This document shows, in pieces, positions 27,274-43,200 of a stretch of DNA of 64,000 nt; within the stretch, counting starts at the first letter, position 1, and every line of letters begins with the position of its first letter. The stretch lies in the sequence record MZ622713.1; one strand, written 5' to 3'. The position numbers and the translations under genes are program-made. The notes under the pieces are model-generated. The model ran no database searches. It was not told the origin of the DNA and saw only the letters and a list, made by a program, of their open reading frames with translations.

Positions 27274-28587
27274 ATGGCTAAGCCTAAACAAGCAGTTAAA
27301 GCACCTGTATCTCTAGCAACAGCAACACCATGTAAATTGGACGAAACAGCAACTCCTGAACCATCGATTCCTGAGCAAACAGGACACGATTCACTGCCGG
27401 AAGTCGAGCAAGAAATTCGTTACGTTCATACAGGACCTAAAGGTTCGGTGGTCACCAAGGGTGGTGAAGTGTTGTCGATTGACACTAAGAACACTGACCC
27501 GGTTAGTGTCTCGGAACTCACCCGCGAATCTTACGCATTAAGAATGACGTTAGAAAATGTCGTCAATCGCATGATGTACCGCAAGTTCTTTTCCGAAGAA
27601 CGTGTTTCATTCTGTGATCGACCTTCTGAAAACATCGAAGACGTGAAACTTTATCCTGTCGTGGTTAGTCCTGAACTAACAGTTTGGATGGACGAACACT
27701 CCTCACTAAACCTAGATAGCAACGGTGAGTGTGATGGTTTCTACTCTCGTGTTCAAGATGAGCTTAACAAAACCAAACGTGTGCTGGTTTTGATTAACTC
27801 CTGTGTTGAACTCGGTGTGGTCAAAGTCCATGATCAGTCTTCATACAACACGTCGGTTTTAATCAACTGTACTGGTAAAGTTAGCTCTATCGCTAGTTCA
27901 GTTGTGGCGGCGGATACACACCATAACCGTGCCGAACTTGAAGTTGGGTCTATGATCAACTCGGACATCACTTTCCGTGGTTGGAAACTGAAGTGTGACC
28001 GTTTAGATACTGTTGATATCAGTGGTTCAACTGTCACTGTTAATGGCATAATCGAAAGTTCAGCCATTGAAGATTCACATATTTGTGGTGACAGTTACAG
28101 CAGCATGGTGTCAACCAATGTTCGTAACTCTACGTTGTACGTCAAGTCTTTCCATCTAGGCAACCGTCATGGTAACGACGTCTGGGCACCTCGTATTAAC
28201 ATCGATCGTGAAGCGTTCTACTTGAATGATCATTCGATTGAGATTCGTCGTGGTTTTGAGTTTGACTATATCGGTCGTGGTTACCGCTGTAATGGCTTGA
28301 TGTTTGTACCTCTACGCAACACAGGTGATGGCATCACCAAGTTCTTGTTAGCAGCGCCTAACAAAGAAGGTCGTGATTACTCATCTCCTGAAGCTATGAT
28401 CGATTGGGATATGAGCCGTGACGAGCTACGTAAAAACGTTACTGCTTTGTTGTTCCCTGAATTAAAATCCGACAATCCTTTGGCAGGCGTTGGCACGCTA
28501 GAAGGTTCTATCATTAATGAAGCGGTTTCGGTCCTATACAACCGTCTACGCATTATTAAACAGACTCGCCTAGCATCTGCTCTGTAA
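27274..28587 (+). CDS. Hypothetical protein with Pro-rich N-terminus and possible beta-helix segment
   Basis: 437 aa, AAGGAA Shine-Dalgarno; short I/V-x-(D/N/S)-S-x-I/V repeats mid-protein. Confidence 0.7.
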   Translation: MAKPKQAVKAPVSLATATPCKLDETATPEPSIPEQTGHDSLPEVEQEIRYVHTGPKGSVVTKGGEVLSIDTKNTDPVSVSELTRESYALRMTLENVVNRMMYRKFFSEERVSFCDRPSENIEDVKLYPVVVSPELTVWMDEHSSLNLDSNGECDGFYSRVQDELNKTKRVLVLINSCVELGVVKVHDQSSYNTSVLINCTGKVSSIASSVVAADTHHNRAELEVGSMINSDITFRGWKLKCDRLDTVDISGSTVTVNGIIESSAIEDSHICGDSYSSMVSTNVRNSTLYVKSFHLGNRHGNDVWAPRINIDREAFYLNDHSIEIRRGFEFDYIGRGYRCNGLMFVPLRNTGDGITKFLLAAPNKEGRDYSSPEAMIDWDMSRDELRKNVTALLFPELKSDNPLAGVGTLEGSIINEAVSVLYNRLRIIKQTRLASAL

Positions 28588-28597
28588 CATTCAATTA

Positions 28598-28631
28598 GTC
28601 CCCAGAGAGCCTTACAGGGCCTCTGGGGGTT
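28598..28631 (+). terminator. Imperfect hairpin
   Basis: CCCCAGAG...CTCTGGGG stem between genes. Confidence 0.45.
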
Positions 28632-28644
28632 ATTAGGAGTTCCC

Positions 28645-29127
28645 ATGGATAATCTACCAACAACAGAAGTTCCCATTTGTATTAATGGGGTAGAAGAAAC
28701 CGTAACGGTAACCATTAGTAATAAACCGCTTTTGGTTCCTATGGCTATCAATGCAGTGATGAATGACGACCCGTTCATTAAACTGGCGATCAACGAATGG
28801 GTTTCTAAGTATCCCGCAGATGGTGTTATTTTCACCTATGTGAGCGATGACGGGCTTTTAACCATTGAGTTCCAACCAGAGTGCACTTTGGATATTGAAG
28901 TCGATCTGACGAAGCCTACGGCGTTCTGGACGTTCGATAGTTCTTGGTGTGGTCGACTAAGAGTAGAAGGTGCTTGTGGGATGTTCAACTCTCATATCCC
29001 TTCTAGCGGCGTTGTACTGCGTGACTCGTTCTTATTCAACCAAGACAACCTTACCCCTACAGCTAAGTTGTTTAACACGACTCTGATCTGTTTAGAAGGC
29101 AATGAACGCAGTGTACATATCACTTAA
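28645..29127 (+). CDS. Hypothetical protein
   Basis: 160-aa ORF, AGGAG Shine-Dalgarno. Confidence 0.7.
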   Translation: MDNLPTTEVPICINGVEETVTVTISNKPLLVPMAINAVMNDDPFIKLAINEWVSKYPADGVIFTYVSDDGLLTIEFQPECTLDIEVDLTKPTAFWTFDSSWCGRLRVEGACGMFNSHIPSSGVVLRDSFLFNQDNLTPTAKLFNTTLICLEGNERSVHIT

Positions 29128-29133
29128 GTTCCA

Positions 29134-29169
29134 TAAGTTCCTCTGTGCCATCGGGTGCAGAGGAACTTA
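29134..29169 (+). terminator. Terminator hairpin
   Basis: TAAGTTCCTCTGTGCC-ATCG-GGTGCAGAGGAACTTA followed by a T-rich tract. Confidence 0.75.
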
Positions 29170-29245
29170 ATTTAAATTATTTTTTAACTGCAATTGACAT
29201 CTCTTTGGGGAGGGGGAGAAAGAGATTAATTAAGATAACTATTTA

Positions 29246-29269
29246 TTATTTTGTATATATACAAAATAA
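29246..29269. promoter_or_regulatory. Perfect 24-bp palindrome, candidate operator
   Basis: TTATTTTGTATATATACAAAATAA, about 20 bp upstream of the promoter motif of the AraC-like gene. Confidence 0.45.
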
Positions 29270-29289
29270 GATGTTTAATATAAAACAAA

Positions 29290-29307
29290 CCTATATAACC
29301 TAGATGT
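29290..29307 (+). promoter_or_regulatory. Putative early promoter (variant)
   Basis: CCTATATAACCTAGATGT, preceded by TAAAACAA like the copy at 33560. Confidence 0.5.
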
Positions 29308-29345
29308 ACTCCTTGACATAATAAACCTTTACTAAGGAAAGAGAC

Positions 29346-30308
29346 ATGAATACAAAAGTAGTTTCAAAGCCAACTAAACAAGATCTTGTAATGTGGGATA
29401 AAGTCACTAAATTCGTTAGTGGTAAACTAAGAAAAATCACTATCCCTGAAATCATGGAAGATGTAGATATTGGTAAACGTGAACTTGAAAGACTTTTTAA
29501 GAAGGTGGTTAAGAAACCAATAGGTGAATGGTTGGTGGGTGCTAGACTACGAGCAGTGACCTCATTCCTAAGAAACCCTAATTGTGATTTTGACCAACTA
29601 CATACGCTTATGGGTATGGAACAAGACAACAGCTTAACCACGTACTTACGTAAGCATTTTAACATCACTTACGGAATGGCGAAACAATTGCATGGCCGTG
29701 GTCGACTGTCAACCTACATAAACACCTTCCATAAACACAAATGCATCGAGTCCTTTTACGCAGAGGAAATGATCAAAGAGATTGAGAAACGCAAAGGTAA
29801 GATCAAGTCTACCGAACTCAAAGCTTTGTTCGATATCTCGGCTGCACACTTCTACCGCATCTGGAACGAGTACAACGGTCCAGAAACACTCCACGAGTAC
29901 GCTAGCTTTATCGAGATCAAATGTTTGCGAGAAGAGTTCCTAGAGGCTGATAACACGCCATTGGCTTTCTTAAGTGAACGTGGGATTGCGGTCCATCGAG
30001 TGGATAGTTTCCATGTTAAACACTATGGTGAAACTTTCCGTAGTTGGGGTGGTAAGAAGATCAAAGGTAAACCTCGTCACCGTGTAAATGGAAAGGAAGA
30101 GATATTAGGCAAACATTGGTTGAATGTAATCAGAGTGAATCTACAAAGCTCTGATACTCGCATCGAGGAACTTGCAGCTAAAATCAATATTACCGACATC
30201 TCTATCCGTAAAGTAATCACCCACTACGCAGGGATGACTTATTTGGAATACAAAAACTCCATCTTAAACAGTCGTCACTCAAATTTAACTGTCAGGTCCC
30301 ATGTATGA
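29346..30308 (+). CDS. AraC/XylS-type DNA-binding protein with repeated HTH domains
   Basis: ITIPEIMEDVDIGKRELERLFKKVVKKPIGEWLVGARL...LMGMEQDNSLTTYLRKHFNIT fits the AraC domain pattern; two further degenerate copies follow. Confidence 0.65.
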   Translation: MNTKVVSKPTKQDLVMWDKVTKFVSGKLRKITIPEIMEDVDIGKRELERLFKKVVKKPIGEWLVGARLRAVTSFLRNPNCDFDQLHTLMGMEQDNSLTTYLRKHFNITYGMAKQLHGRGRLSTYINTFHKHKCIESFYAEEMIKEIEKRKGKIKSTELKALFDISAAHFYRIWNEYNGPETLHEYASFIEIKCLREEFLEADNTPLAFLSERGIAVHRVDSFHVKHYGETFRSWGGKKIKGKPRHRVNGKEEILGKHWLNVIRVNLQSSDTRIEELAAKINITDISIRKVITHYAGMTYLEYKNSILNSRHSNLTVRSHV

Positions 30309-30333
30309 CGATAATTCAAAAGGAAAATAAATC

Positions 30334-30858
30334 ATGCTTATTATCAACACCGATGGCTCCTGCATAGGTGAATCGGGACCCGGACCATCTGGTTACGGGA
30401 TTGTCATCCGTGAAGGTGACGTAGTAATAGAACTAAGTGCGGGATATCGTCGTTCTACCAACAACCGTATGGAAATGTTGGCGACTATCGTAGCGCTGGA
30501 GGGATTGCCTGAGCGTCGTAAGGTATCGGTTACCACAGACTCACAATACGTCAAGCAAGGTATCGAGCAATGGATACACGGCTGGCGCAGAAGAGACTGG
30601 AAACGTGCAGATGGCGGTCCTGTTAAGAACGTGGATTTATGGAAGCGTCTTTATGACATGACACGTTATCATGATGTGACTTGGAATTGGGTTAAAGGAC
30701 ACTCCGGTGACCCAGACAACGAACGTTGTGATTCATTAGCTCAAGATGCTGCCCGTAACCACGCAACCTTAGAAGACGAAGGCTTTTTCACTTATAACGA
30801 AAACCTTCCTAAGTTCACACCAGACCCTAACCGTCAGTGGTGGAGAAGAAAAAGATGA
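30334..30858 (+). CDS. rnhA: Ribonuclease HI
   Basis: [55 protein letters not shown]; all four acidic catalytic residues present. Confidence 0.95.
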
Positions 30859-31175
30859 TAGACATGTCCGAATCCAAAGAGATTCTTAAAAAGATCAAAG
30901 ACTTCAACAAAAAGTCTTTTAAAGACATGAGTCCGGAAGAGGTTAGCGAGTTCAACACCGAGATACTGAGTAACCCTTTGGTTAACAGCATCGTTCGTAT
31001 TAACCTTATGACCGTACCAAACTACTCACCTTATTGTGGGTCTGTTGAGTGTAGGGTGGTTCCACGAACTAATTACAAAGGTGGTCAATTCCATTGTCCT
31101 TGTTGTAGCTGGGTTTCTAAGTTCCCGGATGACTTCATGGCATTGTACCACGGCCATTGGAGTCCAGATCAATAG
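30855..31175 (+). CDS. Small Cys-rich, probably zinc-binding protein
   Basis: ATGA overlap with rnhA; YCGSVEC...FHCPCCSW. Confidence 0.65.
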
Positions 31176-31234
31176 GGGGGGGTCATCCTCCCTTTTCTGC
31201 CGCTTATCAAATATTTGAGTTGAGAGATTAACAA

Positions 31235-31717
31235 ATGAAAATCAATTTAGACCATGTTAATAACGAGCCTAGTAAAGGTTACGTGAGTGTAAGTTTAGCA
31301 TACCATCAATGTGATCTCATCCGTGAGATTTTGGAACAGCAAGCTATCACTCCAATTGATGAAGGTAAATTCCATTGCACTATTGCTTATGACCGTGATC
31401 TAAGCAGTACTTTGGAAATCGACATAGACCCGGGTCGTGTTTATACCGGTGAAGTCATCGGGGTGGAATTACTTGGTGATGTGAAAGATGGATTACAAAG
31501 CGCTGTAGCCCTTACCTTTAAATCTCCGGAACTAACAGAAGAACACTTCCGTTGGATGGCGGTTGGGTTTGATCACAGTTGGCCGGAATACATCCCTCAC
31601 ATGTCCGTAGCTTATGATGTTCCAGTAGAGGAAGCTGAGCGCTTAGTGGACATCCTTCAAATTTTCGTAGGTCAAACATTCTACTTTGATGACCTATCAG
31701 CAGAACCAGTAAAATAA
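31235..31717 (+). CDS. acb1: 2H phosphodiesterase, Acb1 (T4 gp57B)-like anti-CBASS nuclease
   Basis: Two HxT/S motifs (KFHCTIAY, YIPHMSVAY), S.EL..EH....AVGFDHSWPEY and terminal EPVK parallel the recalled T4 57B/Acb1 layout; 160 aa. Confidence 0.7.
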   Translation: MKINLDHVNNEPSKGYVSVSLAYHQCDLIREILEQQAITPIDEGKFHCTIAYDRDLSSTLEIDIDPGRVYTGEVIGVELLGDVKDGLQSAVALTFKSPELTEEHFRWMAVGFDHSWPEYIPHMSVAYDVPVEEAERLVDILQIFVGQTFYFDDLSAEPVK

Positions 31718-31737
31718 TAATTCGTCAGGACAACGTC

Positions 31738-32391
31738 ATGGGAAAGAAAAACAAAGGTACACGTCGGGGTGTACAGATCGCTGCACGTCAAAACAGAATG
31801 GCGCGTATCAATAAATATACCATAGCCAAAGTGGTGAAACAAATCTCCGACCATCTGTATTTCTACGGGAGTCATTCACATCAACTGGATACCATAGACT
31901 GGAATCCAATCCTTACAAAGTTGGTGCGACATGAAGATCAACAAACAGCACTAAAGAGTATGGTGGGGTTATTATCCGAGAAGTCCCCGTGGCAATTGCT
32001 CTTGTTTGTTGGTGTTGAAACCGATGACGCCTTAGAACTGTTTTCTTTCTTAGAGACATTCAAAGATCACACTTACGTTAACGTTAGTGAGCCAACCATG
32101 GATTACATTGAAGCGCGCTTAGCGGATATTAAACAAAACATATCTGAAGAAGCACTATTCAAAGATACTCAGTTAACACTTAACTCTGAGATCAAGGGAT
32201 TTGGTTACTATTTGTTTAACTCTAGTGATTATAATTTAGAAGGGTCAGAGGATGAGATCGCTGACCTATTTTACGAGTCTGGGGTGTTTGACTTACCTTA
32301 CGACCCTAGCAACTATCAACGTGTGGAACGCAAACATTTCTCCGATATGTTTAAACGCCAAGAACTCCGACTTATTAAGGATAAAAAATGA
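31738..32391 (+). CDS. Hypothetical protein, basic N-terminus
   Basis: 217-aa ORF, AGGA Shine-Dalgarno; ATGA overlap with the next gene. Confidence 0.7.
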   Translation: MGKKNKGTRRGVQIAARQNRMARINKYTIAKVVKQISDHLYFYGSHSHQLDTIDWNPILTKLVRHEDQQTALKSMVGLLSEKSPWQLLLFVGVETDDALELFSFLETFKDHTYVNVSEPTMDYIEARLADIKQNISEEALFKDTQLTLNSEIKGFGYYLFNSSDYNLEGSEDEIADLFYESGVFDLPYDPSNYQRVERKHFSDMFKRQELRLIKDKK

Positions 32392-33548
32392 AACACTTTA
32401 TCGACGCTCTACAAGACATCAAAAATGAATCTCAGCTAGCTGTACAACAACGCACTAAAGTTAACTGGTCCCATCAATTCAACATCACCAAAGAGGGCTA
32501 CCTCCCACAATGGTCTGGTATCATCAATGTACCGGGATTAGAAGTCGCTGTAAAAGAGCTGGAGTGGGTTCTAAGTAAAGAGCGTAAACTAGACATCTTA
32601 CATGAAGCGGGTATGAACCACCGTGATTACCTAGCCGCGGCAGAAGACTTAATCCACACTCGTGAGTACACTTACGACGAACGTGTTGATCTTGCCATTA
32701 AGAAGTTCTCTGAGTCTGACGTAGTTTTACGCAATGCCGACGATCTACAACTAGCGCTGGTTGACAACGGTTTAATGCAACGTTACCTGACCGTAGAGAA
32801 ATGCTTAGACGCAATGGGCTTCACCGCTATCCGTGAAGAAGTGGTTTGTAAAGAAGGCGAGACAGCAATCAGCTGGGGTGAAGCGTTTGGTAACCCGACT
32901 AGCACCGGTGCTATTTTGTTCCACAACCCTAAGATGCTTCCTAAGGACCAAGGTATCTCGTACACACTTTGCTTGTCTGAAAACCGTTACACTTATCTGC
33001 CTAAACAAATCATGTTGAGCTTCATGCGCACAGACATCCCGTTGGAAGTTCGTATGGAAGGCATGGACGCACTAAAAGCTAACCCTTACGTTGATCTTAT
33101 CGAAGGCATCCTACAAAGCAAACCTTTTGCTGAGTTGAAGCGTCTTGGTTTAGAACTAACGGAAGAAGTTTACATGCAAGTTGGTGACCAGCACGTACTG
33201 CATCAACTGTTGGATGATTTGTTGATTCCACGTCACGAACTGCATTCCCGTCTACAACTAAGTGAACTAGACCCACTGAAAGAGTTCGGTATCGAAGTTC
33301 TACCTTACGCTTTGTACGCGGAACACGTGGCTCACCGCATGAACATGGTTCATTCTACGTTTACTCTAGATGTGAACTATTTGGTGATGGAACAAGAAAC
33401 GCTAGCTATGTTGGATAAAATCCAAGATGCAGGTGAGAAATACAAAGAACCTGCTCTAGTCCGAATCGATCGTCCGCAAGACCTAACACTAGTGGATGTT
33501 CCTTTGACTACAGAAGAAGTAAAAACTACTAGCTACTTCGGCGCGTAA
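32388..33548 (+). CDS. Thymidylate-synthase-fold protein lacking catalytic motifs
   Basis: MKHFIDALQDIKNE, QFNITKEGYLP, AVKELEWVLSKERKLDILHEAGM and IPRHELHSRLQLSELD...LPYALYAEHVAH align by eye with ThyA; PCH, QRS, N177 and HxY are absent. Confidence 0.65.
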   Translation: MKHFIDALQDIKNESQLAVQQRTKVNWSHQFNITKEGYLPQWSGIINVPGLEVAVKELEWVLSKERKLDILHEAGMNHRDYLAAAEDLIHTREYTYDERVDLAIKKFSESDVVLRNADDLQLALVDNGLMQRYLTVEKCLDAMGFTAIREEVVCKEGETAISWGEAFGNPTSTGAILFHNPKMLPKDQGISYTLCLSENRYTYLPKQIMLSFMRTDIPLEVRMEGMDALKANPYVDLIEGILQSKPFAELKRLGLELTEEVYMQVGDQHVLHQLLDDLLIPRHELHSRLQLSELDPLKEFGIEVLPYALYAEHVAHRMNMVHSTFTLDVNYLVMEQETLAMLDKIQDAGEKYKEPALVRIDRPQDLTLVDVPLTTEEVKTTSYFGA

Positions 33549-33559
33549 AATAAAACAAC

Positions 33560-33577
33560 TCTATATTACTTGGGTGT
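33560..33577 (+). promoter_or_regulatory. Putative early promoter
   Basis: TCTATATTACTTGGGTGT upstream of the chaperonin gene. Confidence 0.7.
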
Positions 33578-33615
33578 GAATCCACTACTTAAAAAACCTT
33601 ACGAGGAAAAATACA

Positions 33616-35175
33616 ATGTTACTTAAGACCAAAGAAACTAAACAAATCAAAACTGAAACTGTCCTAGACGTCACTAGCGCTATCATCGCTACCATGGGTC
33701 CGGATGGTAAGGTGGTTCTTTGTGATCGAAGTGGTAAACCATACCCAACTAAAGATGGTGTTACTGTAGCTAAAGCTATGCGCACAGGTGATAACACTAA
33801 AGACCTACTTGCTACCATGATTGCGGAATGTTGTTTACGCACAGACCAAGTTTGTGGTGATGGTACAACCACGACGGCTTTTCTGCTTCGTGAGATCTAC
33901 ACACGTTTCCAACACAAGAGCAACTTCCGTAACAAACGTTTGATCAATCAATACGTTAAAGAAGTTGTCGAAACGTTGAAGCAACTAGCGGTACGAGTGA
34001 ACATCGATTCAGACTTACTGCGTCAAGTAATGCTGACCACCAGTAACAACGACGAGCGTATCGTTAACAAAGTCTTGGAAATCTACCGTGAGCATCCTCA
34101 CTTGCCAGACTTGACGTTGCGTGAAGCGACTGACGATGAAGACTTAGTACAATCTAACAACGGTTGTGCTTGGCCGGGTGGTTTTGCTTCACCTGAGTTT
34201 TCTAACCTAGGTAACGGTACACCAGAACACTTTAACGCCTACGACCAATATCGTCCGATTCTCCTTTCTGGTAAATTGGACGGACTGGGTCAAGAAAAGC
34301 AGTTAACGGAGTTCATCGAGTACACCAAGGAATACGTTTCTAACGGTGGTACTTACTTGATCGTGTGTCGTAGTACTGAAGACGTTTCAGAACAAGCTCT
34401 GAAAAACATGAACGCTAACCTAGGTCGTACGGCTTACAAGGTGGTAACGGTTCGTGCGGCTGGTTCTTCTGGTGTGTCTATCATGAACGATATCGCGATT
34501 GTGTTGGGTGCTAAGATGCACAGTCAGTTGGTGGCTAACCATCCTGAATACCGTACAGCTAAGCAATACCCTATCGTGCATGTTAGTTCAGCTTCACTGG
34601 CTATCGTTGGTTTCAATGACAAGCATGAAGAACAACTAAATACAGCAATCAAAGAAGTTAACGCATCTTTGAATGAACTGAACGTTGATCAGCGTCACTC
34701 TGCTATCGGTAAGATCGTTGAATCTCGCCTACGCATTTTGTCTGGTGGTTCTATCACGTTGTATGTTGGTGGTTTATCTGAGTCTGAAATCAATGAGCGT
34801 AAAGGTCGTTTTGAAGACGTAGGTCGTGTTTGTAAGTCAGCATTACGTAATGGTGTTTTGCAAGGTTGTGGTTACTCACTAATCCTAGCATCTAAAGTAC
34901 TAAAAGCTAAATACCCTGATTGTGAAATCGCGGGTGATCTAGCTAGTGTACTTTGTCAACAAACCCAATACCTCATGCAACAAGACTACGAAGACGGCAT
35001 GGTCTTTACTAACCTAGCGACTGGTGAGCAAGCTAAAGAACCGGGAGCGATTGGTGTGTGGGATGCGGCATTGGCAACAATCACTGCTTTGGAGTCAGCG
35101 GCTTCTATGGCGTTGTTGATAATCGATACCGATTCCATCATCACTAACTCTCGTTTATCTGAAGTACATTTCTAA
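33616..35175 (+). CDS. groEL: GroEL-like phage chaperonin
   Basis: TMGPDGK.V, TKDGVTVAK, GDGTTT (ATP-binding), G.V.QGCG and C-terminal GVWDA...I.ALESAAS.A; no GGM tail. Confidence 0.9.
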   Translation: MLLKTKETKQIKTETVLDVTSAIIATMGPDGKVVLCDRSGKPYPTKDGVTVAKAMRTGDNTKDLLATMIAECCLRTDQVCGDGTTTTAFLLREIYTRFQHKSNFRNKRLINQYVKEVVETLKQLAVRVNIDSDLLRQVMLTTSNNDERIVNKVLEIYREHPHLPDLTLREATDDEDLVQSNNGCAWPGGFASPEFSNLGNGTPEHFNAYDQYRPILLSGKLDGLGQEKQLTEFIEYTKEYVSNGGTYLIVCRSTEDVSEQALKNMNANLGRTAYKVVTVRAAGSSGVSIMNDIAIVLGAKMHSQLVANHPEYRTAKQYPIVHVSSASLAIVGFNDKHEEQLNTAIKEVNASLNELNVDQRHSAIGKIVESRLRILSGGSITLYVGGLSESEINERKGRFEDVGRVCKSALRNGVLQGCGYSLILASKVLKAKYPDCEIAGDLASVLCQQTQYLMQQDYEDGMVFTNLATGEQAKEPGAIGVWDAALATITALESAASMALLIIDTDSIITNSRLSEVHF

Positions 35176-35182
35176 CATAAAG

Positions 35183-35206
35183 TGTGGGTTCCTACGGGGG
35201 CCCACA
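35183..35206 (+). terminator. Terminator after the chaperonin gene
   Basis: TGTGGGTTCC-TACG-GGGGCCCACA with a downstream T-tract. Confidence 0.6.
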
Positions 35207-35237
35207 TATTTTAGTAATTATTTTTTTAAGGCAAGAT

Positions 35238-35603
35238 ATGTTAGAGAAATTTTATCTATGGTTGCGTAAAAAAGTAGCGGGTGACGAACTTAACGAGTTA
35301 GCGGTGTTAAAGCAAAGACTCGGTGAAATGAAAAGTTACATGAGGTCCGAACCCAAGATCGTGGAAGCGGTGGATTGGATAGCTGGGAACAACCCATCCA
35401 ATATTCAAGGCTTTCGTGATGACTTTCGTTTTCGTTATACATCACGCCCTAACCCATCGCAACATTACCGTGAACAATTGTTAAAGTCGGAACCCAAGTA
35501 TTACGGCGCACACGATGCTTCTGAGTTATGCCCGCAATCAGTTAAGTCAACCATCGACGATGAACCGAGTCCGTCCAACGTCGTTCAGTTCCCGAGAGAA
35601 TAA
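35238..35603 (+). CDS. Hypothetical protein (paralogue of 35769..36044)
   Basis: Start revised to ATG 35238; shares VAG.ELNEL..LKQRL. Confidence 0.7.
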   Translation: MLEKFYLWLRKKVAGDELNELAVLKQRLGEMKSYMRSEPKIVEAVDWIAGNNPSNIQGFRDDFRFRYTSRPNPSQHYREQLLKSEPKYYGAHDASELCPQSVKSTIDDEPSPSNVVQFPRE

Positions 35604-35606
35604 GTT

Positions 35607-35756
35607 ATGAAGAAAAAGAAACAACGTAAAAAAGAAAAGAAACGGCAAGAACAAGCAGCTTTGGTCTTAGCGAAGTTTCAACTCAATCCGGGTATGGTAC
35701 TGACACCGACCCAACAAGCGGTATACTTAAGTATGAATACTCCTACTCGTTTTTAA
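35607..35756 (+). CDS. 49-aa basic peptide (not in the ORF track)
   Basis: MKKKKQRKKEKKRQEQAALVLAKFQLNPGMVLTPTQQAVYLSMNTPTRF fills the gap between two genes exactly. Confidence 0.55.
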   Translation: MKKKKQRKKEKKRQEQAALVLAKFQLNPGMVLTPTQQAVYLSMNTPTRF

Positions 35757-35768
35757 AAGGCAAAGGAT

Positions 35769-36044
35769 ATGAATTGGTTAAAACGTTTTATTAAAAATAT
35801 GGTGGCTGGTAAGGAACTCAACGAATTGTGGTTCCTTAAACAACGTCTCCATGATTTAGAACATTGGTGTTCTTACGACCCTGCTATCTCTGCGGCAGCA
35901 CGTTGGGCGCAAGCTCCACACGAGCGTACCAAAGTAGGGAATGATTTCTGTCCGGACATCGAGCTGATGCGCCGACACCTAAAAAGACACTACACACCTT
36001 CAACCATCATTAATAAAGAGAACAACAATGAACAATGCAAATAA
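35769..36044 (+). CDS. Hypothetical protein (paralogue of 35238..35603)
   Basis: AAGGA Shine-Dalgarno; shared VAG.ELNEL..LKQRL motif. Confidence 0.7.
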   Translation: MNWLKRFIKNMVAGKELNELWFLKQRLHDLEHWCSYDPAISAAARWAQAPHERTKVGNDFCPDIELMRRHLKRHYTPSTIINKENNNEQCK

Positions 36045-36333
36045 TAGTTTAGCTAAACAACTTCCTGTCTACCACCTTCTATCAGACCGTCGTGAGTTAT
36101 TCCGTATCGTACTGATGATTGCGCTCGGTGGAGCCGCATCTTTAATCGGATGGACATGGTTACAAGGAACGATAGGTATCGCTATTTTCTTCCTATTGTT
36201 TATTGTTAACTTTGGTAACTCTTACTTAGTCCGTGTTAAACCTTACGGTAACTTGTGGTTTAGCAAAGGTGCTATCGGTTTAGCATGTATCGTTGGCTTT
36301 GTGATTTGGTCTGGGGTGTCAGCGGTACTATGA
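36028..36333 (+). CDS. Small membrane protein (3 TM)
   Basis: Three hydrophobic segments; overlaps both neighbours. Confidence 0.7.
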   Translation: MNNANNSLAKQLPVYHLLSDRRELFRIVLMIALGGAASLIGWTWLQGTIGIAIFFLLFIVNFGNSYLVRVKPYGNLWFSKGAIGLACIVGFVIWSGVSAVL

Positions 36334-36990: not shown

Positions 36991-38226
36991 ATGTTAAAGA
37001 AGATTTTAGGATCTGTGTATAGTGTGGATATAGAGACTAAGGACCTTTACAAAAACACAACTCTTATCCACAAAGGTAATAAAAAGGGAACTTTCAAAAT
37101 AACAATAAACGGTAAGATTTATAAGGTCGATATCAATTATTGTTACATTCTTGCTCTTTACGAGTTGCATTTTGAAACTGGTGATGAGCATATGTATTTC
37201 AATATTGAAATACAAAAGATGAAAATAAGAAAGTTAAAATCATCGCTTGAAGACATGGTGATTGAAATCCCAGTTTTCTCTTCACCTTTAGAAAAGGAAG
37301 GATATAGAACAATTTCCACGTTTCCTGAGTATGAAGTAAATGAAGAAGGCATTGTCCGTAAGAAAAGTGACGGTGAAGTCATACCACATTATTTTCACAA
37401 AGGTACTGGGTATTACACTTGTCGTGTAAGGGATCCTTTGTTAGGAAAGAATCGTTCGGTTAGAGTTCACCGTCTAATCGCAATGGCGTGGAAGAAAAAT
37501 TTAAACTATGTCGTTGCACATTATGTGAACCATATAGACGGTGATAAGTCGCACAACTATGCGAGTAATGTGGAATGGTGTACTCCTAGCCACAACACTA
37601 AACATGCTTGTGAAGAAGGTTTACAAAAAGCTAGAAAGTATCTAAAGAAGGATTTAGAGACTGAGGAGATCACCGGTCCGATGCTATTGGGCGATCTAGG
37701 GTTTCCAGTAGCTGAAATACGAAATTGGATGAAACGTTTAAATCGACTTTTACCATTCAAAAAGAAATGGGAGATAATAGAGGTCGGTGGTAAATGGGAA
37801 TCCAAGTTTGGAGAAAATAGCTGGATATGCAATGAATATGTAGGTCTAGGTGTGCAGGTTAAAGACGTGAGCAAATGGGAAGCTGGTGAAGACTTTTTAT
37901 TTGAATTTGACACTCAGAAAGCTGCCGCTGACTTTACATGTTCCGACCAAGGAAGAATTTCTAGATTATTAAAGTCGGGAGAACAAGATCAAATTTACAA
38001 TGGTTATTGTTTTAGACCAAAGTCTGATAAACCTTGGGATACCAAACCTTATATTCCGGGTGGTCAGAAAAGAAAGATAAAAATTTCTTGGGAAAATGGT
38101 AAGGAATTAATTTTTGATAATCTTAACTTGGCTGCCGATCATGTGAAGTTAACTCGACAGGCGTTAAGTAGACGTATTAAATTAAACTTATTATTGGACG
38201 GCTTTAGAGTTTCATATGTAAACTAA
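36991..38226 (+). CDS. HNH homing endonuclease (NUMOD4-HNH-NUMOD1-like)
   Basis: YRTISTFPEYEVNEEG.V...GYY.C (NUMOD4-like), VRVHRLIAMAW...VNHIDGDKSHNYASNVEWCTPSHN (HNH) and C-terminal F.(S/T/N)...AA repeats. Confidence 0.9.
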   Translation: MLKKILGSVYSVDIETKDLYKNTTLIHKGNKKGTFKITINGKIYKVDINYCYILALYELHFETGDEHMYFNIEIQKMKIRKLKSSLEDMVIEIPVFSSPLEKEGYRTISTFPEYEVNEEGIVRKKSDGEVIPHYFHKGTGYYTCRVRDPLLGKNRSVRVHRLIAMAWKKNLNYVVAHYVNHIDGDKSHNYASNVEWCTPSHNTKHACEEGLQKARKYLKKDLETEEITGPMLLGDLGFPVAEIRNWMKRLNRLLPFKKKWEIIEVGGKWESKFGENSWICNEYVGLGVQVKDVSKWEAGEDFLFEFDTQKAAADFTCSDQGRISRLLKSGEQDQIYNGYCFRPKSDKPWDTKPYIPGGQKRKIKISWENGKELIFDNLNLAADHVKLTRQALSRRIKLNLLLDGFRVSYVN

Positions 38227-38283: not shown

Positions 38284-38877
38284 ATGTCAAAAATTTATTT
38301 TTACACAAGTGCGATGAATGCCGGAAAATCGACACTAGCTATTCAGACAGCGTTTAACTACAAAGAGCGAGGGATGTATCCTTACGTTCTTAAACCGGTT
38401 GTGGATACCCGTGATGGTTGTCCTCGTACGTTGTCAAGTCGTAGCGGTGCTAAGTGGGATAACTGCATTCCTTTCCCTAAAGAAGGGTTGGGTGAACTAG
38501 AGTTATGGTTGCGTAATCCTGAACAAGCACCAGACGTGATTATCATTGACGAAGTGCAATTCATCAGCGTAGACCAAATCGAGGCACTAAGCCTTATTTG
38601 TGCGGAACGTAAGATTCCTTTGTTGTGTTACGGTTTACGTAATAACTTCCAAGGTGGTGGATTCCCTGCTTCGGATTGGTTGTTGCGTCATGCGAGTTCG
38701 ATCAACATTGTGAAAGGGATGTGTTGGTGTGGTAAGAACGCGACACACAACATGATGGTGTTGGACGGGAAAGCTCACTACGGTAGCCCGGGTGAATCAG
38801 CGGTTGTGGTAGGTGGAAATGAAACTTATCATGCGGTGTGTTTAACCCATTTCCGTGAAGGTAAATACGAGCGTTAA
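38284..38877 (+). CDS. tdk: Thymidine kinase (TK1/bacterial type)
   Basis: SAMNAGKST (P-loop), IIIDEVQF, LCYGLRNNFQG..F..S..LL, zinc lasso CWCG...YHAVC..HF. Confidence 0.95.
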   Translation: MSKIYFYTSAMNAGKSTLAIQTAFNYKERGMYPYVLKPVVDTRDGCPRTLSSRSGAKWDNCIPFPKEGLGELELWLRNPEQAPDVIIIDEVQFISVDQIEALSLICAERKIPLLCYGLRNNFQGGGFPASDWLLRHASSINIVKGMCWCGKNATHNMMVLDGKAHYGSPGESAVVVGGNETYHAVCLTHFREGKYER

Positions 38878-38895
38878 ATTAAGTCTCCGCGATGC

Positions 38896-38922
38896 TATGG
38901 AGGTACAAGACGTGCCTCCATA
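38896..38922 (+). terminator. Hairpin between tk and the next gene
   Basis: TATGGAGGTAC-AAGAC-GTGCCTCCATA. Confidence 0.5.
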
Positions 38923-38940
38923 ATTAATCAAGGAGAAGAC

Positions 38941-40137
38941 ATGAAAGATCCAAGACAAATGCTCATCACTCGTATGAGCGAAGTCCGTATTTTGAATGCG
39001 AAGAACTCAGGTGACCCTGCTAAGTTAGAGGAAGCCGAACGTCTCTTCAAAGATTTAACGCTCGAGGAAGTTACGATTAGTGACATCCAAGAAACTGCAC
39101 CCGGTTCAGCTCGTTATTCCGCTAACATTGATCTAAGTCAACGAGGCGGTGGTGTTATCAAGCAGTTCTGGTCCCCGGCAACACCCACGGATGGGTTAAG
39201 AATATTGGCGGATGAACTGGAGATGTTCAGCTCCCAATATAACTTCATGAGTAATAAACCTGTGTACCACCCAATCCTTTTGGAGTACTACGGTTTAAAT
39301 GAAGTCGCTATGTTTTCCGGAGTCATCCCGTTCAATGATTTTGCGGTGAAGAAACTGGTAAACATAGACCCTGAGTTGGTGAAGACGTACTGCTTCGATG
39401 AGTACGTAGTCTTTGCTGGTCCATTCATTAACGGAATTATGCCAGTCCGTGATCTCACCAATCTTTTCCCGACGGAATGTGATCACCCTGACATCAAGAT
39501 TACTTTATGGCATGAAGATGCTAATGGAGTAAAGCAGTATCCGTTAGGTCCTCGTAAGCCTTTGAAAGTCGGTCCTCATGTCACATCTAAAATCATTATT
39601 GATTTAGAAAGTGTCCCGGGGATGGAAGACGGTGATATAATCACGGTGTATTCGACTGAAGGTGGAGCGTACTATAAGGTAGATACTCCTACCGGTTATA
39701 CCTACGCAGCAGGTTCGCCATTGGAAATTATTGTGGATGACCCAGCCGCTATCGGTAAGTGCGTTTGGCTTACGATCAGTAAAGGTTCTGAGTGGCGTGC
39801 TAGTATCCAAGCCATTCCGATCACCAACCACTCCTACCAGTTCATGTTGGACGGTACCATTAACGCCTCTGTTACTTACCCAGACACTGTCACCGGTTCG
39901 TTTAAATTCAAACCAGTCGGAAACGCGGTGTGGGAAATCCCAGAGGACGATGAACGTCCGGGTCTGTATCTTTTTGACCGCGAAGAATTGTTGTACTTCG
40001 TTGAGTTCAATGATCAAACCATGACTGACTTCGAGTTCCCTGTTCTGAACCCGGGCATCTACGAGTTGGCGATACGCACACCGGGTGCGTACAGCTTCCA
40101 ACGTGGAGGGATGCTAGTAATCGGAGCCCCGGAATAA
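38941..40137 (+). CDS. Probable virion protein sharing an N-domain with the Ig-repeat protein
   Basis: AAGGAG Shine-Dalgarno; the first ~80 aa align with 40208..44737; beta-sandwich-like C-terminus. Confidence 0.6.
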   Translation: MKDPRQMLITRMSEVRILNAKNSGDPAKLEEAERLFKDLTLEEVTISDIQETAPGSARYSANIDLSQRGGGVIKQFWSPATPTDGLRILADELEMFSSQYNFMSNKPVYHPILLEYYGLNEVAMFSGVIPFNDFAVKKLVNIDPELVKTYCFDEYVVFAGPFINGIMPVRDLTNLFPTECDHPDIKITLWHEDANGVKQYPLGPRKPLKVGPHVTSKIIIDLESVPGMEDGDIITVYSTEGGAYYKVDTPTGYTYAAGSPLEIIVDDPAAIGKCVWLTISKGSEWRASIQAIPITNHSYQFMLDGTINASVTYPDTVTGSFKFKPVGNAVWEIPEDDERPGLYLFDREELLYFVEFNDQTMTDFEFPVLNPGIYELAIRTPGAYSFQRGGMLVIGAPE

Positions 40138-40207: not shown

Positions 40208-43200
40208 ATGAAACACATTCGACAAATCCTGTTAGACAAAACGGCACTGATTCGTATCAGTTACGCTGAGTCTAAAGGTGACCCGGCGGAAATAGCATTA
40301 GCTAAAGCCCGCTTTGAAGGTCTAACGGACGATGAAGTCCAGTTCCTAAGTATCAACGAACGTTACACAGGTGCTGGAACTTATATCGGCGAAATCAAAA
40401 TCACGGGACGTGATGGGTTTGAGTTTAAGCAGGAGTGGTCACCGGGTGATACGGTACCTATGCTTAGCACTAAAGAGCGCATCAAAGTCCCTACTTTGGA
40501 AGTATTCCGCAATATCGTTATTCCGGGACTATATTACGTCGAAGACATCGCAGAACTATGTCTGGTCGTGAAAGACTCAATGACTATCCCTGACATTCAA
40601 CGTTTACTAGGTTTTGAATTTGACCCGGGTGAACTTGAAGTTCGCTTAAGTCATCTAAGGGTTCAGTCTCCTTTTGTAGATGGAACACTTCCTCTTAAAA
40701 CAGTAACTCCTAATCCTGACGGCACTATGACTGACGGTACAGGTATTACGGTAACAGACTCATCTATTGCTGGTAACATTTTGCCTGCTAACCCTTACGC
40801 TCCTACACAGTACATTACGGTGGAACGTGTGGGTTCAGAGCCAGTGTTCTCCGCAGAAATCGATAAAGCGTTTAAAGCTGAATTCGTAGGTAGCTACCGC
40901 CAAGGTGAAATCATCGAAGGCAGCCTAGCAGAAGACAACACATTCAGTGTTGATCTAGATGTTAAGAACCAATTGACTGACGACCTTCAATTATTAGTGT
41001 CGGTAGGTCTAGACCGCGATAAACTCACAGACGTTTACTCGGTGTCGTACATCGATGAACATTGGGCTATCGGCGAGTACACCACGGAAGTGGATTTAAC
41101 TCGTGTTGGTCAACCTTTCCGTATTGCTGGTTCAGTAAGTGGTGATTTCGGTCAAACGCCTTGGGGTAATGAATTACTTAATCCTAAGATCATTGTTGAA
41201 GAAATCGGTCAAGAACCTGTTGAGATACCTTTCAACGTGGATGGTACGTTTGACGTACGACACACACCAGTTGTTGCAGGTGAGATGACGGTTAAGTTTG
41301 TTTGTGGTCTACCACAAGACTTGAACGTGTTCTCTGAAACTCACCAGATCTTAGCCGCCCTTGCTGTGGATGATTTAATCCTAGGTCCTTTGTCAGCAGA
41401 CAAAACCGAAGTGGGTGCAGACGAACTGGTTACACTCACTAGTTCTTTGAAGTCAGCAGACGGACTAACGCTGACTGACGCTCCTGTGGACTTCTTGGTT
41501 GACGATCAAGTATTAACTCAGTTGTTTGCCAACCCAGAAGGTGTTTTACAACATATCTACGATGTAGAGAACGACACCACAGACCCAGTGACTTACGCAG
41601 TTAAACTTCGCTTAGGCGCGGAAGAGACCAACGTAATCACTATCACGGTTCAACCTTCTGATCAAATCCCGGGTCGCTTCGAGATTCTGGTTAATGAGGG
41701 TGAGTTGTTCAAGCCGGGTGAACTACGCTTTAAGATCTATGATACTGTAGATCGTCTGATGGTGGGAACCTCAGGTACTTGGTTCCGTGAGAACGGTGCA
41801 CCTAAAGCTTACGTGGTAGATGGTGAAGAATACGTTGCTCAACTAGATTCTCCTATCGATGTGGAAAACACCGTAGTGGAATCGATCACATTGAAATGTC
41901 AATCACTAGAAACTCCAGTAGACTTTACTTGGAATCTAGTGCGTCGTTTTGATGAAGTGTTCTTGGAACCTACTAACCCTACCGAAGGTGTGACGGATGC
42001 ATCCATCACTCTAAGTGGTAAAACGTTAGACCAGACCGATCAACCTATCGCTAACATTCCGTTGGTATTTAAAGATGATGGTTTGAAGGTATCTGATATC
42101 AGCTCTAACGACCAAGGTGTGTTTAGTGTTAGCGTGACTGCTACTGACGAAGCAGAACACCTATATTCTTTCGTAGGGGAGAATGACATCGGTGCTTCTA
42201 TCGCAGTACAGTGGACTAAGAACCACATCATGAGTTCATTGGAACTGACCAGTTCTACGTCGGTTACGTTGTTCACAGATGAGACTTTTGAAATCATCGG
42301 TAAACTGCTTGACCAGTACAATGAAAACATGGCTGGTGAAACAGTTACGTTGGAATACCCTGACGCTCATACCGTGGACCAACAAACCACAGCAGACGGC
42401 TTCAATTTCGTAGCAGCTTACCGTGACAACGGTTCTTTGAACCACACGTTAACTGTTAAGTCTGGTGAGCTATCCGCTGACGTTAATGTGACTTGGGAAA
42501 CGAAGAGTGACCCTATCATCGCTAACCTAACGGTAGTGCCTAACACTGTAGACATCGGTGAGCAATACACAGTAACTGGTGAGATTCAAGTTAACTACCC
42601 GTACGACTGGTCAACGACTCGCGTAGCTGTAACGAATGATGCAGGCGACGTAGTTAATGTGACGTGTGCGGCAGACGGTAGCTTCTCTTACACAGGTACT
42701 GCGGTTGCTCAAGGTAACTTTACACTACGTGCTGATGCAGTGGATGTGGTTACTCCAGAAGAAACGATCGTGCTTACGGTACGTGAACCTCGTGTAGCGA
42801 CTACTATCAACGTAGCTAACCTACCTGATAGCGCTAGCGTTTGGGACGGCCAAACCGCAGTGATCACTGGTACTATTCTGGACCAACATGGTGCTGTGAT
42901 TGATGTGCCGGTTACGGCTGATCTAGAGGGTACTCCGTTGACCAACACTTCTGAGGTAGCAGGTGAATTCGAGTTCTCTGCAACTTACGTTGGTGTAGGT
43001 ACCGCGGTTATGACCATCAATGCTGGCGAAGTGTCTCGTGAAATCACCATTACTTGGAAAGAAATCACTTACGACATCACTAGCATCAAGTACAGTCCTG
43101 AAGGTGTAGTACAAGGTCAGCCATTTACTTTCCAAGGTAAACTAGTATCTGCGGGCGGTGGTGATGTCGCGAACAAAGACATCGACCTAGTGTTGACTTC

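Follow-up and report, generated by a model that had tools for sequence, protein, structure and literature searches.

The Locus in Vibrio Phage phiKT1019

The stretch of DNA considered in this work (64,000 nucleotides in length, from here on the window) is 100% identical to part of sequence record MZ622713.1 (238,840 bp), which corresponds to Vibrio phage phiKT1019; window positions equal record positions minus 62,000. The clade of this phage is assigned to the Gorgonvirinae, within the Chimalliviridae, and the building of a phage nucleus by phiKT1019 has been experimentally demonstrated (PMC10587174). At positions 32388–33548 (+), an open reading frame (ORF) of 386 residues, starting with an ATG, encodes UPT53921.1, a protein labeled "hypothetical protein" in the record. 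An AlphaFold2 (AF2) model, Foldseek searches, hhalign profile comparisons and substitution rates make it highly probable that this protein, denoted here as the relic, has the fold of the thymidylate synthase (TS) ThyA, is dead for the TS reaction and is kept under selection. The original prediction, made by inspection of the DNA alone, had described an intact ORF of this length, and the ORF was recovered as such. "Hypothetical" is the annotation of the gene across all nine phage genomes that carry it, and a search of PHROGs with the single sequence assigned the relic to PHROG 26020, a family of unknown function.

The gene lies within a compact block. Immediately upstream, always in this position and in the same phages, is an ORF of 217 residues (31738–32391, +), referred to here as the partner, made of a basic N-terminal tail (with 8–11 Lys/Arg within the first 30 residues) and an acidic body. 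The TGA of the partner overlaps the ATG of the relic (ATGA), and a Shine-Dalgarno sequence, AAGGA (32377–32381, +), can be read directly inside the end of the partner ORF, with a 6-nt spacer to the relic ATG; as judged from this arrangement, the relic is translationally coupled to the partner in phiKT1019. The partner occurs in exactly the same nine phages as the relic. It could not be identified with any Pfam or PDB entry, and a profile search of the PDB returned only matches with E values of 0.1 or higher. Matches to Nmad2 (E 0.12) and to DUF6075 (E 0.0025) were dismissed as noise, as they involved single members only, and that to Nmad2 was out of register.

Further upstream, the first gene of the putative unit (31235–31717, +) encodes an Acb1-like 2H phosphoesterase (PF23474, E 4.1e-16, 59.5 bits for a cutoff of 27; PHROG 755), so that the Acb1 gene originally placed two genes away from the relic was indeed found there (E 4e-16). 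Both H-x-T/S motifs are present in this protein (FHCTIAY and PHMSVAY), which is 63–72% identical across the clade, and its sequence indicates that it is probably an active anti-CBASS-type (cyclic oligonucleotide-based antiphage signaling system) cyclic-nucleotide phosphodiesterase in a nucleus-forming phage. Downstream of the relic, after 67 nt, lies the gene for a GroEL-type chaperonin (33616–35175, +; PF00118; PHROG 5725, E 7e-148), which occupies this place in every locus with an available downstream flank; no GroES-like ORF is found beside it. A scan for terminators detected a terminator-like hairpin with an 11-bp stem (35182–35207, +), which closes the putative unit, and a weaker one at 31175–31191, upstream of the Acb1-like gene, but none between the relic and GroEL. 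This pattern suggests that the Acb1-like gene, the partner, the relic and GroEL form one transcription unit. A scan for sigma-70 promoters yielded fewer sites than shuffled sequence, although it must be considered uninformative, given that chimalliviruses rely on RNA polymerases of their own.

Homology to Thymidylate Synthase

When searched as a single sequence, the relic gave no Pfam match at E ≤ 1, including PF00303, the ThyA family, and nothing was retrieved from NCBIfam, from PADLOC or, by phmmer, from the PDB. A BLASTP comparison with E. coli ThyA produced a weak top high-scoring segment pair (E 0.14), which fell on the motif ELxWxL..LHE (residues 51–83 versus 52–84), in the same register in both proteins; this motif had been noted as kept at the outset. 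Exhaustive searching of 1.84 billion representatives with HMMER yielded only nine clusters which, together with three further phage orthologues, provided an alignment of 16 sequences. When a profile of 12 family members was run against the PDB, 23 of the 24 weak matches were ThyA, all of them aligning positions 1–83 to ThyA 1–84. At the other end of the protein, residues 303–383 of one family member (P0008) matched positions 177–254 of the PF00303 model with 20.3 bits (E 3.3e-4); the gathering threshold of this model (24.3 bits) was reached neither by the relic nor by P0008, the best family member.

Profile–profile comparison extended the similarity to the whole protein. The relic family aligned globally by hhalign with a profile of 42 viral ThyA sequences at 89–93% probability, while a reversed-profile control gave at most 0.3%. 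Against the long-form ThyAs of six jumbo phages, the probability rose to 98.1% in local mode (E 6.4e-14, 345 columns) and to 99.3% in global mode (E 4e-19), the 345–347 columns aligned being equivalent to the full length. By the same method, the short canonical ThyAs were matched by residues 1–83 of the relic only (75%, E 2.6e-5), and either these or the group containing a second ThyA of the phage itself, a separate protein of 302 residues described below, covered only residues 1–84 (63–75%, E ~1e-5).

The fold was then modeled with AF2, without templates and from the 16-member alignment, which contains no ThyA sequence. This model had a predicted local distance difference test (pLDDT) score of 87.8 and a predicted template modeling (pTM) score of 0.81; an earlier one, built from four close homologues, had a pLDDT of 39 and was discarded. 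Foldseek matches were considered as the best 50 of each library (PDB and BFVD). All of the best 50 in the PDB were ThyA, with E values from 2e-8 to 6e-7, a probability of 1.00 and template modeling (TM) scores of 0.55–0.68 by target; those to E. coli ThyA entries had E ~1e-7. In BFVD, the top annotated matches outside the family were the long TSs of phages 201phi2-1, Aeromonas D3, Yoloswag and RisingSun (E 2e-13 to 6e-9), and the long TSs of jumbo phages ranked ahead of canonical ones. Thus, the full-length homology in hhalign and the modeled fold bore out the initial proposal of a ThyA homologue, and the check by AlphaFold and Foldseek suggested at that time returned a ThyA fold. Two further BFVD entries, UPI001EA56C5A (393 residues, E 2e-17) and A0A1C3NFC4 (471 residues, E 3e-14), were structurally nearer to the relic than any annotated TS and may be further non-canonical ThyA-fold proteins of other phages.

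Architecture and Likeness to Long-Form ThyAs

The relic can be divided into segments that follow the order of those in ThyA. The N-terminal core (residues 1–83; 32388–32636, +), with helix A, strand i and helices B and C as defined from HH alignments and secondary structure, is the highest-confidence part in every HH alignment. After the site corresponding to Trp83, the comparison with long-form ThyAs by hhalign and HMMER places insert 1, or "small domain" (residues 84–156; 32637–32855, +). Within it, invariant columns and windowed conservation delimit a family-specific motif, F-V-D-N-G-M-M-x-K-H-L-T-L-x-x-C (residues 121–140; 32748–32807, +), in which N127, T135 and C139 are invariant; it represents the most conserved stretch of 20 residues in the relic (windowed value 0.72), and its residues have no conserved ThyA counterpart. 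A relic of the Tyr94 loop comes next (32856–32888, +), G157-x-x-G160-x-x-(W/H)163-G164-x-x-F167, which aligns with ThyA G88-D-L-G-P-V-Y94-G95-K-Q-W98, as supported by the HMMER match to the long-form ThyA of the viral contig L056 and by HH confidence values of 7–9. P205-K206-Q207 (33000–33008, +) occupies the site of Pro145-Cys146-His147 in the alignment and is directly followed, in the AF2 model, by a strand (residues 207–216) equivalent to beta-iii. Insert 3 (residues 217–282; 33036–33233, +), placed by the alignment between beta-iii and beta-iv, is helical (AF2 helices at 219–277) and contains an invariant R222 matching the Arg of the "EER" frame of long-form ThyAs. The equivalents of beta-iv and helix J (residues 283–317; 33234–33338, +) follow, with three HH alignments and one HMMER alignment in agreement. 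Of the smaller motifs proposed at the outset, two could not be maintained: the R22-T23 pair, read as part of an "xRT" motif, is a feature of phiKT1019 alone, shows no conservation across the family and is not the counterpart of Arg21 in the alignment, and the Asn of N180-P181, read as part of "NP..L", is not conserved and falls where the register is ambiguous.

The best score of the family hidden Markov model (HMM) corresponded to the 401–407-residue ThyA of L056, a contig of 234 kb, in three collinear segments. This ThyA is 89% identical to that of Xanthomonas phage Xoo-sp14, and its relatives include those of phages Goslar, Asesino, Kwan and CR5, as well as SPN3US-like and Pseudomonas jumbo phages; Goslarvirus and Erskinevirus belong to the Chimalliviridae. 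The Xoo-sp14-like (L056 and L100) and LucasX ThyAs carry insert 1 at the same site as the relic (62–80 residues versus 73), while insert 3 is common to these and to the ThyAs of Goslar, Asesino and CR5 (56–67 residues versus 66) and shares with the relic an ER...(V/I)P-x-x-x-L frame. The presence of insertions like those of long-type ThyAs, noted early on, was therefore substantiated for inserts 1 and 3 by both hhalign and HMMER, although the ThyAs of Goslar, Asesino and CR5 bear a looser likeness to the relic than those of the Xoo-sp14-like phages and LucasX. A conserved helical insert of ~50–65 residues between beta-iii and beta-iv, with the frame EL(T/S)xxER ... GVPx(R/H)xLS, was also observed among viral long-form ThyAs in general, in active enzymes from widely differing phage groups (loci L100–L105 and many of L011–L090).

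In spite of this common architecture, the long-form ThyAs and the relic share only about 16% identity, and the former retain all catalytic and substrate-binding residues, whereas the relic family keeps almost none. Moreover, long-form ThyA genes are found in modules with dihydrofolate reductase or thymidylate kinase genes, with no synteny with the relic locus, and no homologue of the 217-residue partner was found beside the active long-form ThyAs. A maximum-likelihood tree of the relic, long-form and other ThyAs gave the relic a stem of ~5 substitutions per site and did not recover the chimallivirus ThyAs as monophyletic. The notion that the family descends vertically from one chimallivirus lineage of ThyA was withdrawn, as the tree is uninformative in this regard, and because it cannot place the family, only architectural and profile similarity to the long-form ThyAs is claimed. 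The relic would have descended from a long-form ThyA of the jumbo-phage kind, losing the TS chemistry and keeping the fold and both inserts.

Loss of the Catalytic and Substrate-Binding Residues

The numbering of E. coli ThyA was transferred to the 16 members of the relic family by means of the long-form ThyA alignment. The site of the nucleophile, Cys146, is occupied by K206 (Lys in 13 of the 16 members, Asn in the other three). Among the residues that bind the phosphate of deoxyuridine monophosphate (dUMP), Arg21 is replaced by variable, non-Arg residues; Arg126/127, together with strand beta-ii and Trp133-Asn134 (a region of the dimer interface that also takes part in phosphate binding), is deleted on the best template and, on an alternative register, Arg126/127 correspond to Ser/Thr and other non-Arg residues; and Gln165-Arg166-Ser167 has become L291-S292-E293, with S, T, M, E, G or A at the Arg166 site and variable residues at that of Ser167. 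The site of Asp169 (folate/N3) is also variable. Asn177, responsible for pyrimidine recognition, maps in four alignments to E303, which is invariant (16/16). The position of the general base, Tyr94, corresponds to residue 163: 12 of 16 members have a His there, the relic itself a Trp, and the three sequences closest to it Ala, Ser or Gln. His207 and Tyr209, which contact the 3'-OH, are replaced by a hydrophobic residue and by Asp or Glu, respectively, whereas the folate-binding Trp80 and Trp83 appear as R79 and L82, with H78-R79 in place of Ile79-Trp80. What is kept amounts to Glu58 (E57), Asp81 (D80), Gly95, Trp98 (as Phe), Pro145 and Tyr181 (Y307). In contrast, the catalytic set is retained by all six long-form ThyAs compared and by the 302-residue ThyA of the phage. 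The loss of the PCH, QRS, Asn177 and HxY elements that had been proposed from visual comparison with E. coli ThyA was thus corroborated (they are now P205-K206-Q207, L291-S292-E293, E303 and the replaced His207/Tyr209, respectively). Cys146 is conserved among the aligned verified viral TS homologues, including the 5-hydroxy-dCMP (deoxycytidine monophosphate) synthases (PMC13326640), and the relic consequently falls outside all branches compared in that work.

It might be argued that the relic is a working TS, or a pyrimidine hydroxymethylase, with relocated residues, for instance with C139 as the nucleophile, since C139 is invariant and the spacing N127...C139 equals that of N134...C146 in E. 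coli ThyA. However, this register breaks the collinearity with the Tyr94-loop match and is not recovered by any profile alignment, and on these grounds C139 was rejected as a relocated nucleophile. In addition, C139 lies in insert 1 and not before beta-iii, the mapped site contains no phosphate-binding Arg, there is neither Asn nor Asp at position 177, and the genome already has a complete ThyA, all of which makes this explanation scarcely credible.

Distribution and Selection

The relic family was found in exactly nine sequenced phages, namely phiKT1019, phiKT1028, pTD1, VP4B, Aphrodite1, USC-1, 5 TSL-2019, 2 TSL-2019 and PDCC-1. Beyond these Gorgonvirinae genomes, it is represented only by a few metagenomic contigs; a metagenome scan provided no further members, and a word-indexed protein search gave nothing beyond the exhaustive HMMER search. 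The ORF is intact in 16 of 16 members (376–431 residues). The ratio of nonsynonymous to synonymous substitution rates (dN/dS) for the relic was 0.067 between USC-1 and Aphrodite1 (dS 0.20) and 0.036 between PDCC-1 and 2 TSL-2019, a pair that gave 0.067 for GroEL, 0.033 for RNase H and 0.044 for the partner ORF. These values (0.04–0.07) denote strong purifying selection, as had been anticipated from the intactness of the ORF. Over longer distances, the relic diverges faster than neighboring genes: identities to phiKT1019 orthologues are 49/49/30% for the relic, 55/54/44% for the partner, 73/73/57% for GroEL and 91/92/76% for RNase H, the divergence of the partner running parallel to that of the relic.

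The fact that the relic is the fastest-diverging gene in the block could be taken to indicate a decaying remnant devoid of function. The intact ORFs and the low dN/dS argue against decay. A second possibility belongs here: ThyA binds its own mRNA, and the relic could have inherited this property as an RNA-binding autoregulator; RNA binding had been contemplated in the original prediction. All family members, however, are acidic, with isoelectric points (pI) of 4.5–5.0, which disfavors general RNA binding. Taken as a single alternative, a functionless remnant or an inherited RNA binder is very improbable.

A Second, Complete ThyA in the Same Genome

Among the checks proposed for the relic was the search for an active thyA elsewhere in the genome. 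A complete ThyA of 302 residues is indeed encoded, as judged from its sequence, at record positions 159492–160400, outside the window (PF00303, E 3.5e-52), ~65 kb away from the relic gene. It is present in all nine relic-carrying phages, with 89–98% identity, and its next relatives are found in Vibrio phages of ~76–81 kb, such as SSP002 and MAR10 (56–59% identity). This protein was absent from the relatives of the long-form ThyA of L056 at E ≤ 1e-40, and no pairwise similarity between it and the relic was detectable; it has a Gly at the position of Arg127 and nothing aligned at that of His147. The phiKT1019 genome also encodes a thymidine kinase and a thymidylate kinase. A gene for an HD-domain phosphohydrolase overlaps the start codon of the 302-residue ThyA by one base (record 158698–160400 for both), and the two may constitute a coupled pair in deoxynucleoside monophosphate metabolism. 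In phiKT1019, the synthesis of thymidine monophosphate (dTMP) would be carried out by the 302-residue ThyA. This would represent a clean functional displacement, in which a compact ThyA, with its nearest outside relatives in Vibrio siphophages, supplies the chemistry, and the copy of the long-form type was freed to change.

The coexistence of both proteins in nine out of nine phages raises the possibility of a regulatory or dominant-negative subunit that would form a heterodimer with ThyA of the phage or of the host in the style of a "prozyme"; a dominant-negative partner had been proposed initially. As an obligate dimer, ThyA completes its active sites with Arg126' and Arg127' from the other subunit. 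A precedent is offered by other families, in which dead paralogues regulate an active enzyme (PMC3663545). In the relic, nevertheless, the beta-ii/Arg126-127 segment of the dimer interface is deleted, or rewritten without Arg, and the relic does not track the conserved candidate partner, since it is only 30–49% identical among phages whose ThyA is 89–98% identical; the ~65 kb between both genes also speaks against such a pair. The altered interface and the decoupled divergence disfavor a dominant-negative role, and a regulator of ThyA appears decidedly improbable.

Considered together, the fold, the full-length homology, the loss of the catalytic residues in 16 of 16 members, the low dN/dS and the existence of a second ThyA support the conclusion that the relic is a ThyA homologue unable to perform TS chemistry and maintained by selection, insofar as sequences and structural models can tell. 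The central proposal of the original prediction, a catalytically dead ThyA homologue under selection, has therefore held. By an operational definition of a pseudoenzyme (homologous, devoid of essential residues and selected), the relic may be counted as one with respect to TS chemistry.

The Genomic Neighborhood

The block containing the relic shows a fixed order: DNA ligase ... helix-turn-helix (HTH) protein, RNase H, small ORF(s), Acb1-like, ORF of ~215 residues, relic, GroEL ... thymidine kinase. This neighborhood bears on the proposal that the relic acts against host immunity, either by soaking up an immune signal as a sponge or by acting on a host defense protein as its decoy or inhibitor, in a cluster with the Acb1-like protein and the 217-residue partner. 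Its location two genes from a bona fide member of the Acb1 family, in the same putative transcription unit, agrees with this notion, as do the acidic character of the family (pI 4.5–5.0) and the fact that the relic and the partner outpace neighboring housekeeping genes in divergence, as proteins at the interface with the host often do. However, synteny with RNase H, DNA ligase, GroEL and thymidine kinase corresponds to a replication and nucleotide region and not to an obvious anti-defense island, and since this synteny is fixed within a single phage clade, the adjacency to the Acb1-like gene carries little functional information. Furthermore, the dN/dS of close pairs is as low as that of GroEL, the old nucleotide site has lost every anion-binding arginine, there is no significant match among PADLOC models (which represent defense, not anti-defense, systems), and the best 50 Foldseek matches in the PDB are all ThyA. 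No known family of sponges (Acb2, Tad1 or Tad2) appeared among the best 50 Foldseek matches in each of the general structure libraries. In particular, a nucleotide sponge acting through the old dUMP site, as suggested at first, is disfavored by the loss of the phosphate arginines and by the charge of the mapped cleft, in which conserved acidic residues are at least as many as basic ones. An anti-defense role is, on balance, improbable.

Several other features of the region were recorded. A very strong terminator-like hairpin with a 16-bp stem (29134–29169, +), located after an ORF at 28645–29127, probably bounds an upstream unit. A protein of 320 residues (29346–30308, +) matches the AraC-type HTH_18 family weakly (E 1e-6, below the Pfam threshold) and is among the fastest-diverging of the block (38/38/21% identity to orthologues); several more AraC-like annotations exist near record positions 211898–214459. 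Beyond GroEL, the genes at 35769–36333 and 38284–40002 encode proteins 81–97% identical to those of pTD1, whereas in the block at 27274–35175 the identity is only 21–76%. This places a mosaic breakpoint at ~35200–35750, and the 302-residue ThyA is likewise 98% identical to that of pTD1, a mosaic pattern that indicates that Gorgonvirinae lineages have recombined recently. The gene immediately preceding that of thymidine kinase is annotated as an HNH homing endonuclease (36991–38226, +; record 98991–100226); at the pTD1 locus (L010) there is no homologous ORF of at least 70 residues, and the ~270 nt between the flanking homologues are too few for an HNH gene, so that the endonuclease would seem to be a phiKT1019-specific mobile insertion. 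Finally, an ORF of 4.5 kb (40208–44737, +; record 102208–106737) is annotated as a diguanylate cyclase/phosphodiesterase (GGDEF and EAL) with a PAS sensor, and a second annotation of the GGDEF/EAL type, unusual in a phage, is found at record 222814–224883. This ORF may be mis-annotated or may encode a real protein that manipulates cyclic di-GMP.

Residual Conservation and a Possible Binding Role

In spite of the loss of the original residues, the former active site has not been released from constraint. The residues within 6 Å of dUMP C5 have been listed (PMC13326640), and the relic positions aligned to 12 such residues showed a mean conservation of 0.70 versus 0.55 in the other ThyA-aligned columns (permutation p ~0.009); a set of 22 functional positions was likewise more conserved (p ~0.01). 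The new conserved residues of the cleft are H78, R79, D80, Y203, K206, Q207, E299 and E303. The loss of TS residues under such strong selection implies a new task for the relic, and the conservation of the former cleft, together with the family-specific motif, favors a binding role. In the mechanism proposed, the relic would be a non-catalytic binding module, whose remodeled cleft (E57, H78, R79, D80, Y203, K206, Q207, E299 and E303) would hold a new ligand or protein, and the motif of insert 1 (N127, T135 and C139) would act as a lid, joining the cleft in holding the ligand or partner. The likeliest partner would be the translationally coupled, co-occurring protein of 217 residues with a basic tail. 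That the relic is a binding module working with this protein is a tentative proposal, to which less than an even chance is given; for the overall picture, which joins a TS-dead relic under selection with a binding module, the balance tips slightly in favor.

The same residues can be read in a different manner, as those of a neo-enzyme that catalyzes another reaction on a substrate without a 5'-phosphate, by means of K206, E303, E57, H78 and, in most members, His163, and/or of C139. The pocket positions are conserved above background and have acquired new reactive side chains, the lid motif contributes the invariant residues N127, T135 and C139, and the TS superfamily has evolved unexpected chemistry, such as that of the flavin-linked 5-hydroxy-dCMP synthases (PMC13326640). 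Yet in the verified viral homologues of that study Cys146 remains conserved, position 206 of the relic family alternates between Lys and Asn, and position 163, although His in 12 of 16 members, is Trp, Ala, Ser or Gln in the subclade of the relic, which fits a fixed catalytic role poorly. In addition, no hypermodification genes (glycosyltransferases or extra kinases) are adjacent. A new enzyme is therefore considered unlikely. Formulated more broadly, the idea of a ThyA fold turned into a new module of nucleus-forming jumbo phages, be it a Lys/Glu enzyme or a binding factor with a counter-defense or regulatory role, together with its partner, is possible but doubtful.

Certain observations weigh against the picture of a selected, TS-dead protein that serves as a binding module. 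Adjacency of the relic to the 217-residue protein within one narrow clade constitutes weak functional evidence. Conserved Lys, His, Glu and Tyr residues and an invariant Cys would suit a new enzyme just as well, and the conservation of the former pocket could be purely structural, for instance in the form of a buried salt-bridge network filling an empty cavity. With regard to the alignments, the HH confidence at E303 is low (2), though four of them agree, and the register of residues 170–200 is ambiguous; as for the origin of the family, the tree cannot place it and singles out no particular long-form lineage as its ancestor.

Relation to Known Systems and Significance

By modeled fold and homology, the relic is a member of the TS superfamily that lacks the functional residues of ThyA considered above and stays below the Pfam threshold. 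With canonical ThyA (that of E. coli, PF00303) it shares the fold, the register of the N-terminal 83 residues and the conserved Glu58 and Asp81, and it differs by the lack of the nucleophile and of the phosphate and folate sites and by about 120 extra residues. The phosphate-binding arginines are conserved in the hydroxymethylase and 5-hydroxy-dCMP synthase branches of the superfamily. T4 gp42, the dUMP hydroxymethylases, MilA and the RB69 and DLP3 5-hydroxy-dCMP synthases have a ThyA fold like that of the relic, and cytosine-specific enzymes of the superfamily carry an Asp at the Asn177 site, where the relic has Glu, also acidic. However, in Foldseek the relic matches a gp42-type protein far more weakly (E 1.7e-3), no hypermodification genes exist near the relic, in contrast with the hydroxymethylase/hydroxylase branches, and the viral homologues aligned in PMC13326640 keep the Cys146 that the relic lacks. 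A different parallel is offered by the trypanosomatid prozymes of deoxyhypusine synthase and S-adenosylmethionine decarboxylase (AdoMetDC), in which, as in the case of the relic, a disabled homologue is selected beside an active enzyme of the same fold; in the relic, however, the interface segment is altered and the evolutionary rates of the two proteins are decoupled.

The practical side of these findings is that the relic is still listed as "hypothetical" in the genomes of phages meant for use in aquaculture, phiKT1019 being among the related phages under development for phage therapy in this field (PMC10587174).

The TS superfamily is a textbook case of a fold tied to a single covalent mechanism. 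Literature searches did not retrieve any description of a non-catalytic ThyA-fold protein. A branch that has given up its nucleophile along with the phosphate clamp and the folate site, and is nevertheless selected as strongly as GroEL or RNase H, shows that the ThyA scaffold can be put to other work. If the broader idea of a new module working together with its partner is true, the relic would represent, as far as these searches show, the first described function of a ThyA scaffold other than TS that does not involve the Cys146 mechanism.

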